Assembly (NCBI GenBank): GCA_977020255.1
Contig: CDROCS010000253.1
Location: 4,588,001 to 4,652,000 of the forward strand
Length of the DNA: 64,000 bases
Direction: 5' to 3'
Origin: Obrimoposthia wandeli
Lineage: Eukaryota
Shown: one piece after another, positions 34,299 to 38,865 of the stretch
Position numbering within the stretch: the stretch's first letter is position 1
Layout of the letters: the number at the start of each line of letters is the position of its first letter
Notes under the pieces: model-generated
Told to the model about the DNA's origin: nothing
Database searches by the model: none
What the model saw: only the letters and a program-made list of their open reading frames with translations
Translations under genes and position numbers: made by a program

Positions 34299-34510
34299 GC
34301 CTTCATCACAAATAAACTACCCATGATGCTAGATAGTTCTCAAGGTAATTGCGTTCTATCGGCTTATCCATATGCCAAGTTGACGTAGTGGATTAAAAAA
34401 TTTATTATCTTCAGATACTTTTAAAATTTACCAAGTGTTAACCAAATAATTACTATTAGTTAACGGATTTAAAGTCATTAAAAATGATTTATTACAGGGA
34501 AGAACAATCC

Positions 34511-36049
34511 ATGATTAGTAAAAAAAACAAACTGCTCACCTCCTCAGCCCTTGCACTATCTCTTGCAGCCTGCGGTGGCAGTGGCTCTGACAATTCAGAG
34601 CTAGTGTCAGTAAAAACACCCGTGCCAGTGCTAACACCAATACCAGCGCCAATTCCAGTACCAGTACCAGTACCAATTCCAGCTCCCATCAGTACCACAA
34701 TCAACTCTAGCGGAAAAGTTATCGATGGATATGTAGAAGGCGCGACAGTATGGTTAGATTTTAACGGTGATGGCAAATATGACAAACAAACAGAACCCTC
34801 TACCATCTCTGGCGAATCAGGTGATTACAGCTTTGACTTCACCGAAGAACAAGCATCATGTGTCCCGTATTCAACTACCTATGTCGATGTTCCCGTTGGC
34901 GCTATGGATCTTGACCTTGGCAAAGTGACCGAAGCTTATCAAATGTCATTTTCACCATCCATCGAACCAATATCCGATGGTGATATCCGCAATATTTCAC
35001 CACTAACCTCCGTTATTTGGGAACAGCTAAAAAGCCAACTCCAAGATAATGATAAAGGTAATTTAACCTGTGATAAGCTAAAACAAGACGGTAATCTTCG
35101 CTACGAAATAAAAAATGAAGTGGAAGATGTAATGCGTAATCTGGTGCAGCACTACAACCTATCGGAAGCTCAAATCTATTCTGATTTTATCGCTTCTAAC
35201 GACAGCGAAACTTATGATCGCGCTCAATCAATTGTCAAAGGTCTAAAAGCTGCATATAAATATAAAAAAGCACTTGAAGGTACTAACCCTGACGCAACTG
35301 AAATCCGTGTCACTGTTTACCAAAATGCCAGCAAAGATGAAGAATATGGCTTCACGGACGCATGGTATCGCGATGAAATTATTTTCCTCGATACAGGATA
35401 CTCCTTTGAAGAAGTAAAACTGACTGACGATAAATCACATGGTCACGTTGATGTCATTCTAACAAAGCTCCGCAGAATCAATCAACCTTGGGGTAACAAA
35501 GACCTTAATGGATTGCTAAGTCTTCGCCAAGACACCTACCGTAACAAGGACAAGACTTATCGCTGTGGCAGTATAGAACGTGTAAGTTTCGATAAAAACG
35601 GCGTGAATTACGAGCTAAATAATTCATTTAGCGGCAACACGTCATTTACAACAATAGAAGCATGCTCAAACGATAATCTAGCCACTCCATATGAGCGCAA
35701 CTACACCTTTATGTTTACCAAAGAAAATACAAGGTACACAACTGATTTGTTTTTTAGAGAGCAAAATGAAGAGTTCACCACACTACCAGATTGGATCAAC
35801 GTAAAAGAAAAGAGCGAGATGTTAGCCGCCACAGAGATGATCAATCATATGTCAGTAATTGCCATCGGTTGGGACGACGAAGTCATTGTTGATACTGATT
35901 ACTGGCGTAAACGCATGGAGTACGACAATATAGTTATTGACAAAAACAATGACAATGAATGGCTCAAGTCGACATTAAATGAAGACAACACCAGAAACTA
36001 CGAATGTAGCATAGATGGCGTGAATTGGATTACATGTAAAGGCTATTAA
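34511..36049 (+). CDS. Surface lipoprotein of unknown function with Pro-rich linker
   Basis: Lipobox LAA-C, (Pro-X)n linker, GKVIDGYVEGATVWLDFNGDG Ig-like/Ca-binding-type module; start ATG 34511. Confidence 0.85.
   Translation: MISKKNKLLTSSALALSLAACGGSGSDNSELVSVKTPVPVLTPIPAPIPVPVPVPIPAPISTTINSSGKVIDGYVEGATVWLDFNGDGKYDKQTEPSTISGESGDYSFDFTEEQASCVPYSTTYVDVPVGAMDLDLGKVTEAYQMSFSPSIEPISDGDIRNISPLTSVIWEQLKSQLQDNDKGNLTCDKLKQDGNLRYEIKNEVEDVMRNLVQHYNLSEAQIYSDFIASNDSETYDRAQSIVKGLKAAYKYKKALEGTNPDATEIRVTVYQNASKDEEYGFTDAWYRDEIIFLDTGYSFEEVKLTDDKSHGHVDVILTKLRRINQPWGNKDLNGLLSLRQDTYRNKDKTYRCGSIERVSFDKNGVNYELNNSFSGNTSFTTIEACSNDNLATPYERNYTFMFTKENTRYTTDLFFREQNEEFTTLPDWINVKEKSEMLAATEMINHMSVIAIGWDDEVIVDTDYWRKRMEYDNIVIDKNNDNEWLKSTLNEDNTRNYECSIDGVNWITCKGY
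34636..34689 (+). repeat. Hexamer (Pro-X) coding repeat
   Basis: CCAATA CCAGCG CCAATT CCAGTA CCAGTA CCAGTA CCAATT CCAGCT CCCATC; three exact CCAGTA copies at 34655-34672. Confidence 0.85.
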
Positions 36050-36173: not shown

Positions 36174-36243
36174 GCCAGAATAAGTCGATCTTCAGGCGTT
36201 CTACCTTACTTACCTAGCAAAAAATAGCCACTTTTTTAATTCT

Positions 36244-36266
36244 GCCACCCATGATAAGTATTGAAT
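36244..36266. repeat. Left inverted motif flanking the HUH transposase
   Basis: GCCACCCATGATAAGTATTGAAT is 18/23 identical to the reverse complement of 37512-37534. Confidence 0.65.
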
Positions 36267-36477
36267 TAACGAATTAACTATAATGATAACTACAAGCAAT
36301 CATGACAAACTGATTGAAGATTTTCAGGTTAAATAAAATAGGTATTTATAACGTAATCTATTTGGGTTATTGCCTTATTATTCAGATTGCCCAATTCATG
36401 GAGGGTTAGCTTAGTTTTGATTTAGCTACGCCCGTCACCTTAAGGTAACAGTAATTTTTCTGCTGATAATAGAGGAA

Positions 36478-37458
36478 CTATGCGCTATTTAAACAGGCTT
36501 GAGCATTGGCTATACCGTGTGCGCGTTGTAAGCCAACATGTTCACTAAATTCACCTAAGTGCTCCGCGGTACCTACCGCACCTGTGAAGATACTTTCAAA
36601 ATTCGTGGTCAATTTTATCCAGCTTTCATCACTGATATGAATCCTTGCTAGAATACTTGCTGTTTTATCATTGATAGCACCACGTTTGTCATCACGCAAG
36701 ATACGCCCTGTTTCATCAACTAGTGTTAAGTAGTCTTGTAAACTAAAGCAAATTCCCGTTGTTTTGTGTTGGTGTTCGTTACCCGTAAAAGGTAATAACG
36801 AGCTTGGTTGTTCACCTTTAATCACGGCTTTGATGCGTAGTTGAATACTGGTAAAGTCAGACTGCTCTGATGTTCGGGCAATGCCTGCCCGTACGGGATT
36901 TAAATCAACATAAGCCATGCACGACAGTAATGCCCCTTCATCAAGTAATGCCTGTGATTTAAAACGCCCTTCCCAAAAGTGCCCTGTACAGTTGTCTTCT
37001 TTGTTTGCTTGTCGGGCAATAGGCTCATTGAGCGAACGCATAAACCAACTGATATCAATTAATCGCTTTTTATACACATCAGCCGTACTTTCAACCATCG
37101 CCAATTGAAACTTATCAAGCGCTTGGTTATTTTGATATTTTTGAGTCAGTAGTGTGCCCTTGAATAATAGATGCCAACGCGTAAGCACTTCGCCTGTTGA
37201 CCAGTTTTTGACTTGCTCGACATCTACGTGTAATACGAGATGTAAGTGATTATGCATTACTGCATGGGCACAAATATCGATAGAAAATACCTGAGCTAAT
37301 TGAAAAATACGCTTTTCAATCCATGTACGCCTATGTTCAAAACTGGCGCCTGTCTCCCTATCTACCCCACACAAAAATGCCTTTCGTACCGTGCGGCTGC
37401 AAATGTGATAATACGGCGTATCTAATAAACTAATTTGTTGTGAACGAGGCTTAGGCAT
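36478..37458 (-). mobile_element. RAYT-like Y1 HUH tyrosine transposase (IS200/IS605 TnpA superfamily, long form)
   Basis: YYHICSR strand, HUH motif MHNHLHLVL, FWEGRFKSQ, catalytic Tyr in YVDLNPVRAG; uninterrupted ORF of about 326 aa from ATG 37458; no tnpB nearby. Confidence 0.9.
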
Positions 37459-37506
37459 AACAATCACCAAACTTAACAAAGGTAAATTAAGCTTAGTTTA
37501 GTGATT

Positions 37507-37584
37507 GAAATATGCACAAATTATTATGGGTGGCCTAATAAGTTCAGAAATATGCACAAATTATTATGGGTGGCCTAATAAGTT
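37507..37584. repeat. Tandem duplication (2 x 38 bp identical, 40-bp period) containing the right inverted motif
   Basis: GAAATATGCACAAATTATTATGGGTGGCCTAATAAGTT at 37507-37544 and 37547-37584; partial third copy CCTAATAAGTT at 37591-37601. Confidence 0.95.
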
Positions 37585-37616
37585 AAGTTACCTAATAAGT
37601 TATAGTCTGATGAATA

Positions 37617-37653
37617 GCTGCAAAAACAATCTCGAAAGATCAACAGACCCTAG
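37617..37653 (-). mobile_element. Terminus of a CTAGGG-type miniature element
   Basis: Minus strand CTAGGGTCTGTTGATCTTTCGAG, 17/20 identical to 8101-8120; the inner boundary is approximate. Confidence 0.55.
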
Positions 37654-37656
37654 TGA

Positions 37657-38865
37657 TTATACTACCAGACTAGGTTGGGCTCCGCACTCGGCCATAACGA
37701 CTTTGTTTCGCCCCGTTGCTTTAGCTTTGTATAAGGCTGTATCTGCGGCCTCTAAATAGAGACAAAGGTCAGGACTATCTTCCTCTATCATTGCCAGACC
37801 AATACTGACAGTAGTACAAAAGTCTTCTCCTTTTTTTGATTTAAGAGTAAGTGAAGACATAAATTCACTAATTCGCTTGGCTATATTTTTTACATCAGCG
37901 TGGTCAATGTCGACGCATAACACGACAAATTCTTCACCACCAAATCGGGCTACTATATCGGTTGAACGAGTATTTTCTGTCAGGCAATGAGCAAATTCGA
38001 TTAAAACATCATCGCCTGTAGCGTGCCCATAAGTGTCATTAACTAACTTAAAATGATCTAAATCGAATGCCATGATTGCGCAAATATTTTCTCCTTGTAT
38101 GTGACGCTTTATTGCTACTTCTGACAGTAAATTAAACCCCCTACGATTAAGCAGTCCAGTAAGAGGATCACTCTGAACTAATCCGTTCAACTTAGATTGA
38201 AGGCGCTCAGCGGAAATGAGCATCAATCCAAACATAGAAGTAACTTGAATAAAAACAACGGTAATAAATGTTTCGATACTGTAAGTCATTGAACTGCTGA
38301 TTAGTGGTGGGAGGCTAGACGGTAAGGTAATCACTTTAAAAATAGACAGCACTGCGACCACAGTAAAGCCGCAACCAACTAAAACTGAAGTGATTAGTCG
38401 TGGAGAACGGTAACTGATAAATTCTTTGGCTATTGCAAACTGATAAAACGCCAAAGTTAGAAATAACATTATATAACCAGTTCGAAATAACGCACCGTCT
38501 TCAATCCATTCTAAGGCTACCAATGCTCTGGCACTTACAGAGAAAGCGACGACAATCAAGGCGGGTAACATAATTAGCAATGGGTGTAGTCGTTTTCTCT
38601 TAAAGAAGTATCTTGATGCACTCCACCACATTGCATGAGTGGCCATAACAGCGATTACTACAAATAATATAAGTGATGGGTGAGGCGACTCGAGGTCCAG
38701 CAATATGGAAGAAAAACATACCGCCAATGCAAGATGCCCCCCAGCCCATAGTGTCATCCCCGACATACGCAGAATAGAAAAACGAGCATAAATGTAGGCA
38801 AAAAAAGCTAATATGTTCAGTGTTGAAAGTATCAACACTAATGTTCTAATATCAAATTCTTCCAT
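37657..38865 (-). CDS. Integral membrane diguanylate cyclase
   Basis: About seven TM helices followed by a GGEEF domain with RxxD I-site (RSTD). Confidence 0.93.
   Translation of the reverse strand: MEEFDIRTLVLILSTLNILAFFAYIYARFSILRMSGMTLWAGGHLALAVCFSSILLDLESPHPSLILFVVIAVMATHAMWWSASRYFFKRKRLHPLLIMLPALIVVAFSVSARALVALEWIEDGALFRTGYIMLFLTLAFYQFAIAKEFISYRSPRLITSVLVGCGFTVVAVLSIFKVITLPSSLPPLISSSMTYSIETFITVVFIQVTSMFGLMLISAERLQSKLNGLVQSDPLTGLLNRRGFNLLSEVAIKRHIQGENICAIMAFDLDHFKLVNDTYGHATGDDVLIEFAHCLTENTRSTDIVARFGGEEFVVLCVDIDHADVKNIAKRISEFMSSLTLKSKKGEDFCTTVSIGLAMIEEDSPDLCLYLEAADTALYKAKATGRNKVVMAECGAQPSLVV

Follow-up and report, generated by a model that had tools for sequence, protein, structure and literature searches.

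Inverted nine-nucleotide cores around a subclass 2.3 Y1 transposase gene suggest a TIRtron-type mobile element

Where does the transposase unit at this locus begin and end, and what kind of unit is it? The question is raised by an open reading frame (ORF) on the minus strand of the window, by which we mean the whole 64-kb stretch analysed here (positions 4,588,001 to 4,652,000 of contig CDROCS010000253.1, assembly GCA_977020255.1, Obrimoposthia wandeli). A sequence-only reading of this DNA had proposed that 23-nt motifs lying in inverted orientation on either side of this ORF, tnpA (36478-37458), hold the recognition core of a poorly characterised class of HUH nuclease, and that 36244-37574 is its unit. 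Based on comparison with related loci, we consider it probable that 36234-37544 is one intact ~1.3-kb element of the TIRtron type, resembling an insertion sequence (IS), with a Y1 transposase gene between terminal inverted repeats (TIRs). The element reaches ~37602 when a duplicated end is counted. In our best reading it contains one transposase gene of TnpA-Y1 subclass 2.3, a putative promoter of its own, a 3' spacer of about 225 nt and imperfect TIRs that appear to be built on a core of 9 nt which, in the outside-to-inside direction, is GCCACCCAT.

The 64-kb window has exactly three copies of the 9-mer ATGGGTGGC, and all of them bracket the tnpA ORF: a minus-strand copy at 36244-36252 and two plus-strand copies at 37526-37534 and 37566-37574. 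The expected number is 0.32, none of 100 shuffled sequences reached three, and no solo cores were found elsewhere in the window. The 23-mers containing these cores were located where the sequence-only reading had placed them, and direct comparison agrees with its count of 18 of 23 positions for the inverted match between left and right copies, which a repeat search lengthens to 28 nt at 75% identity and to 37 nt at 70%. The distal TIR, beyond the 3' end of the gene, spans 36234-36266 on the minus strand and includes about 10 semi-conserved nucleotides outside its core (36234-36243). The inner copy of the promoter-proximal TIR spans 37512-37544 on the plus strand, with the outer 10 nt CTAATAAGTT at 37535-37544. 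The two right-hand 23-mers are identical and lie within a perfect tandem duplication of this end (37507-37586, plus strand, period 40 bp, 2.0 copies, 100% matches), which supplies the outermost core. Just beyond the duplicated end the outermost end segment is partially repeated, with CCTAATAAGTTA present two times (37574-37602, plus strand), and in sequencing run X3 we noted one contig with TAATAAGTTA inserted at 37535.

The evidence that carries our reading comes from the family. We compared 80 loci encoding homologs at 52-87% identity, with one genome per species, and 60 of these were scorable in that both flanks are present. In most loci a core of the form G(C/A)CACCCA(T/C) sits 74-83 nt upstream of the ATG, and across the homologous loci its reverse complement lies 182-268 nt beyond the stop codon. 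The inverted 9-mer pairs are exact in half of the scorable loci (30/60) and differ by one mismatch in 10 more. Conservation of an ATGGGTG(G/T)C core in the flanks of homologs had been named beforehand, by the sequence-only reading, as a point on which its proposal should stand or fall, and these pairs bear it out. The two ends also change together. At position 2 of the core GCC is paired with GGC and GAC with GTC, with no cross-pairings among the loci that have exact or one-mismatch cores, and overall both ends co-vary in at least six different ways. Examples, each given as upstream then downstream core, are GCCAGCCAT and ATGGCTGGC (L012), GACAGGCAT and ATGCCTGTC (L031), GCCATCCAT and ATGGATGGC (L044), GACATCCAT and ATGGATGTC (L067), GACACTCAC and GTGAGTGTC (L077), and GACACCCAC and GTGGGTGTC, which are found in L037, L039 and L042. 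The same arrangement of cores is present in two metagenomic relatives with about 40% protein identity, one of them from a GC-rich host. Read in the outside-to-inside direction, 112 ends give the consensus A.TAA..A. G(C/A)CACCCAT aaTaA.

Core types cluster by clade on the protein tree, requiring 4 changes compared with 9.5 for shuffled labels, and none of 500 shuffles gave a number as low. The same Colwellia genomes can house two deep protein lineages, each with its own matched cores, and in C. marinimaniae the co-resident lineages have the GACAGCCAT and GACAGTCGC core types. Such clustering is what would be predicted if gene and ends are inherited together. It is consistent with cognate recognition and is not proof of it. 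From these comparisons we infer that the 9-mer is a recognition core.

The limits of the unit can be read from copies within a single genome. Pairs of such copies are 89-95% identical, and their alignments extend past the upstream core by 0-11 nt and past the downstream core by 3-11 nt, which sets the unit at 1.28-1.31 kb. A related contig from a marine metagenome (run X8) matches the window up to 37544, 10 nt outside the core. The unit proposed from the sequence alone was thus correct to about 10 nt on each side.

Several observations indicate that the unit is multi-copy and suggest that it is mobile. Several genomes have at least three loci each, in unrelated contexts, and there are copies on plasmids and chromids, one of them a conjugative Shewanella plasmid. 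The hosts of homologs include Colwellia, Shewanella, Psychromonas, Paraglaciecola and others. Between Shewanella metallivivens (L016) and a Psychromonas metagenome-assembled genome (L020) the transposases are nearly identical, with a tree path length of ~0.17, indicating recent transfer between genera. Of 14 Colwellia loci, not one has the flanks of the window copy. The ends of the elements account for the breaks that short-read assemblies have at these genes. Some contigs of ~1.2 kb hold little besides the gene; for one of these (L004) the coverage is 428, whereas a large contig from that assembly (L077) is at 168. For the organism of the window itself we used run X1, a public run with 94% of the window's words. 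Its exact-match contigs have a depth of 80-95 on the gene body and 40 on the flanks; overall the gene body is at 2-4 times the depth of the flanks, and many more diverged pieces also match the gene. Based on these depths and pieces, this organism has one or more additional near-identical copies and also diverged ones.

The weak hairpin that had been described at the right-hand copies does not fold more stably than shuffled controls (-2.9 kcal/mol, z = -0.30), and DNA folding of seven ends gave z-scores from -0.95 to +0.65. Pairing within the flanks of 112 ends averaged 3.7 of 8 positions compared with 3.1 in cross-sequence controls, a slight excess driven by the Colwellia clade. We therefore rejected hairpin ends as a family feature. 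Reading the sequence also gave no GTAG or GGAG tag at either end of the unit, so that folding, pairing and sequence agree with the earlier observation that these ends are neither IS200/IS605 hairpins nor GTAG-type repetitive extragenic palindromic (REP) sequences. The 10-bp direct repeat AGCTTAGTTT exists as reported. It lies inside the unit, not at its edges, and this 2.1-kb AT-rich stretch has four exact 10-nt direct pairs in all, so we attribute it to chance and not to target duplication. No target-site duplication is visible at the window copy.

The region between gene and promoter-proximal TIR contains a further conserved feature, a CTAAGCT box at 37490-37496 on the minus strand, about 35-45 nt upstream of the ATG. 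A box of the form CTANN[CT]T at -35 to -45 from the ATG is found in 62 of 81 loci, compared with 12.6 expected, and judging from its sequence it is probably a -10 element of the TAnnnT type; a generic sigma-70 promoter scan did not call it. On the other side of the gene, the non-coding 3' segment between stop codon and distal core (36253-36477, minus strand, ~225 nt, defined by family comparison and run X1) is conserved in length family-wide and differs in sequence among lineages. The similarity of the window to Colwellia loci stops ~14 nt beyond the stop codon.

The tnpA ORF encodes a protein of 326 amino acids counted from the ATG, or 333 if read from an upstream TTG as in the ORF listing. 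Its HUH motif, HLH at residues 71-73, and the YVDLNP motif at residues 183-188 are both intact, as the sequence-only reading had noted, with H71 and H73 predicted to form the HUH site and Y183 predicted to be the catalytic tyrosine. N70-H71-L-H73, W162-E163 and Y183-V-D-L-N-P188 are invariant across 36 aligned homologs, and the HUH-to-Y distance is 110. General models detect the protein poorly: the Pfam Y1_Tnp score of 18.5 is under its threshold of 23, and the NCBIfam model REP_Tyr_transpos (NF047646) gives 38.8 bits against a cutoff of 80 with only the C-terminal half of the model covered. The AlphaFold model (predicted local distance difference test, pLDDT, 87.8; predicted template modelling score, pTM, 0.89) places additional helices at residues 80-155, which separate the HUH strand from the strand ahead of the tyrosine helix. 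Its top structural matches are to E. coli TnpA-REP (4er8, with a REP hairpin bound; Swiss-Prot Q47152), with TM scores by target of 0.65-0.68, followed by the TnpA proteins of IS200, ISDra2 and IS608, and the Foldseek probability is 1.00 against 4er8, 2f4f, 2xma, 2ec2 and 2a6m. As modelled, the product is a Y1 HUH fold with complete catalytic motifs, and its catalysis is predicted. No tnpB-like ORF is adjacent in the ORF listing of the window, in agreement with the sequence-only reading.

Residues ~196-326 form a helical, conserved, subclass-specific C-terminal region, which is kept across the 36 homologs. These last ~130 residues match no Pfam family, and structural searches with the domain found nothing significant (best E = 3.4 with Foldseek against the PDB, best wide VIA match Z = 4.0). 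Three-helix helix-turn-helix (HTH) domains appeared among the matches at noise level only, and CcdB was dismissed as a relative at a sequence match of E = 0.27. Homologs of the whole protein are abundant. More than 8,000 word-sharing candidates were scored, the best being Colwellia proteins at 82-89% identity that their sources name 'transposase' or 'RayT', and a profile-free scan of 1.84 billion representatives gave 1,178 cluster representatives at E < 1e-30. The class was described as poorly characterised in the sequence-only reading; it is one already described, since the protein matches subclass 2.3 of TnpA-Y1 in its motifs, length, HUH-to-Y spacing, host taxa and copy number (Quentin, Siguier, Chandler and Fichant 2018, PMC6006769). 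With this and the other corrections given here, the interpretation in the sequence-only reading is supported.

The ends also occur apart from the gene. We counted 38 occurrences of each locus's own core in 137 kb of distal flank, compared with 0.64 for permuted cores. In Marinomonas there is a 72-nt miniature element with both ends and no gene (L031:818-889), in which the promoter-proximal end, consisting of the upstream core of that locus and the promoter box, is followed with hardly a gap by the distal end, and another solo end lies 56 nt upstream of it. Solo promoter-proximal ends are found in L018, and L007 and L059 have arrays of distal ends. The array in L059 (5700-6760), 1.5 kb from a Paraglaciecola element, contains 13 or more solo units of the distal end, made up of ATGGGTGTC and flank, and there a terminator-like host sequence is co-duplicated with a period of ~554 nt.

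Duplication of ends, as in the 40-bp duplication of the window, is found at about 35% of homologous loci. Of 45 proximal ends, 16 have a tandem repeat within 60 nt outward of the core, as do 17 of the 49 distal ends, compared with 4.6% of random windows. In the examples that we read, the repeated units have a common outer start and a variable stop in or beyond the core, and some contain locus-specific flank bases (L006, L007). Partial tandem copies made up of the 3' part of the gene, the 3' spacer and the distal end stand directly behind complete elements (L001:4183-4501, L007:4219-4577 and L017:4200-5129), and the 3' spacer of the window is closer to the second, duplicated segment of L001 than to the first.

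How might such an element work? The transposase would recognise the core by its sequence, not via a DNA hairpin. It would then nick one strand within ~10 nt outside each core, using Tyr183 and an HUH-bound metal and forming a 5'-phosphotyrosine link, after which the segment would be moved or copied. Because the proximal core abuts the promoter region, autoregulation is suggested, and binding there would probably also throttle tnpA transcription. The inverted geometry is unlike the same-strand pathway of IS200/IS605. A further proposal, which we offer tentatively and think unlikely, is that subclass 2.3 is a mechanistically distinct Y1 HUH type that differs from both 'peel and paste' transposition and REP processing. 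Its insert and C-terminal domains would read an unstructured 9-nt core by sequence at inverted ends and nicking would take place ~10 nt outside it, and the nested end duplications (fixed outer start, about one third of ends) may be footprints of abortive copy-out or strand transfer.

Some of our results weigh against our main reading. The inverted ends are hard to square with the same-strand 'peel and paste' of IS200/IS605. No empty site was found by several approaches (neighbour proteins, the flanks of four loci and contigs aligned to the window): the lipoprotein neighbour has orthologs of no more than 71% identity, which are non-syntenic, the proteins that flank the element in the window are not on record, the flanking proteins of L018, L073, L080 and L042 led to the same genome only or to a strain with the element present, and no contig aligned to the window has a joint skipping the element. 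The outer ~10 nt could belong to the element as its tip or be an AT-rich target that it prefers. The sequence duplicated in run X1 starts near 36430-36459, not at the distal core, and a single-copy contig extends from the flank up to 36459. The 3' spacer also differs among otherwise near-identical copies, and taken together these two observations mean that some duplication may come from recombination and not from whole-element transposition. Finally, the strong conservation of the protein across Colwellia also fits a host-beneficial role.

That last point leads to the alternative that the enzyme is domesticated, a RAYT-like processor of single-stranded DNA retained by the host after self-transposition was lost, with the cores as cis sites that spread in the manner of REP or REPIN sequences or serve the host. 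The conservation between species agrees with this, as do the GC content of the element, which is the same as that of the window, the solo and miniature core-bearing repeats and arrays near genes, TnpA-REP as the closest solved fold, and one strain pair that has the gene at an identical site. However, it is the whole 1.3-kb unit including the gene that repeats within genomes, with sharp edges at the cores, and copy numbers of three or more in unrelated contexts, the plasmid copies and the near-identity across genera are IS-like. A mean of 3.9 copies per genome is reported for subclass 2.3 (PMC6006769), and the window, moreover, is without the scattered solo cores. We consider domestication unlikely. 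That the cores serve regulation only, as operators or terminator-associated sites of tnpA or its neighbours with no tie to cleavage or mobility, we consider highly improbable: the proximal core does lie directly upstream of the conserved promoter-like box, but no regulatory role is obvious for the inverted, covarying second copy ~200 nt beyond the stop, homology between copies stops at the cores, solo copies and arrays occur at a distance from any gene, and no terminator-like structure was called in the tnpA region.

A different kind of alternative retains mobility and changes its route. Copying could be one-ended and rolling-circle-like, in the manner of IS91/ISCR, starting with a nick at the promoter-proximal tip and replicating through the gene to a loosely recognised terminator core. 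This would account for the variable 3' spacers and the nested duplications: the 3' segments are variable and often tandemly duplicated (L001, L007 and L017), the nested end duplications that we read share their outer start, and the duplicated sequence in run X1 leaves out the 3' spacer. Yet the distal core is conserved as well as the proximal one, and at a conserved distance, and known rolling-circle transposases are Y2 enzymes or members of different HUH families. We regard one-ended copying as quite improbable. An element bounded by two inverted cores is our preferred reading, and the best-supported way to state it is that the TIRtron arrangement of the sister subclass 2.1 extends here to subclass 2.3.

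The neighbours of the element are a gene for a lipoprotein at 34484-36049 and, on the minus strand at 37657-38865, a GGDEF gene. Just past its lipobox region, the lipoprotein gene contains a short tandem repeat rich in Pro, Val and Ile, with 6- to 24-nt periods (34625-34683). Upstream of this gene we considered a further copy of the motif, ACTACCCAT at 34317-34330, and rejected it, as a 7/9 match is at chance level. Between the element and the stop codon of the GGDEF gene there is a short dispersed repeat of ~40 nt (37613-37654). In run X1 its depth at 37621 is ~380, compared with 40 for the flanks, and in runs X1 and X3 between 5 and 6 different contigs diverge on either side of it. It occurs in both orientations within one metagenome contig and as a single copy in the window. 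No Rfam families were detected in the window.

Marine Gammaproteobacteria have thousands of subclass 2.3 genes, and in public annotation their products are called only 'transposase' or 'hypothetical protein'. The sole systematic survey gave this enzyme no DNA partner. A definition of its ends turns an orphan into a testable system. That definition has four parts, namely a 9-nt core, a fixed position relative to the gene, lineage-specific variants and natural miniature derivatives, and it gives annotators a rule for the element. The cognate and non-cognate pairs of core and enzyme that coexist in one genome are ready-made controls of specificity. If a Y1 enzyme does read a short unstructured sequence, this would be of interest for HUH-tags and single-strand DNA tools.

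Among known systems, the enzyme is closest to subclass 2.3 as defined by Quentin and colleagues (PMC6006769), with a median length of 325 amino acids (326 here) and, as diagnostics, the NHxH, WE and YVDLNP motifs, an HUH-to-Y spacing of 110, a core insert of 55 residues and a C-terminal tail specific to the subclass. The three motifs and the spacing are all present here, and the additional helices of our model at residues 80-155 agree with the insert. The hosts in that survey belong to Alteromonadales or Chromatiales, and their genomes have several diverged copies; in the family studied here we likewise find Alteromonadales hosts and multi-copy genomes. The difference is in the DNA. Automatic and manual searches in the survey gave no REP-like sequences beside genes of subclass 2.1 or 2.3, and it lists no associated repeat for subclass 2.3, whereas we find a covarying inverted 9-nt core with miniature and solo derivatives. 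We found no published description of subclass 2.3 ends in the literature, and a search with the 9-mers returned unrelated primer matches only.

The organization most resembles that of the TIRYTs or TIRtrons (Di Nocera, De Gregorio and Rocco 2013, PMC3733652), mostly of subclass 2.1, in which a Y1 gene has TIRs at fixed distances. Their repeats are unrelated to GTAG REPs, also occur as solo, dimeric and clustered copies, are moderately abundant and share the motif GGGGWSAS. Here, too, the Y1 gene is flanked by inverted cores, which are exact or differ by a single mismatch in 40 of 60 loci, and TGGGTGTC and TGGGTGGC match GGGGWSAS at 6 of 8 positions, a resemblance that is suggestive. In contrast, the protein is of subclass 2.3 and not 2.1 (none of the 26 published TIRYTs falls in subclass 2.3, PMC6006769), the 9-mer core is different, and the tail of tnpA is without a recognisable DnaA-C or HTH Pfam domain.

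The RAYT or TnpA-REP system (E. coli YafM, 4er8) shares with our element the closest solved fold, the Y---NP tyrosine motif and cognate repeats that are inverted around the gene and co-vary with it. It differs in that the ends here have no GTAG tag or stable palindrome, the protein is twice as long and scores well below the cutoff of the family model NF047646, and the gene-bearing unit itself is multi-copy. With IS200/IS605 TnpA (IS608 and ISDra2) our element has in common the HUH/Y1 fold, a single-gene unit of ~1.3 kb and the lack of a target-site duplication visible at the window copy. In IS200/IS605, however, the ends are subterminal hairpins on the same strand and the tyrosine motif is Y---Q, while here the ends are inverted and unstructured, the motif is Y---NP (YVDLNP), the Y1_Tnp score is below threshold and there is no tnpB partner.

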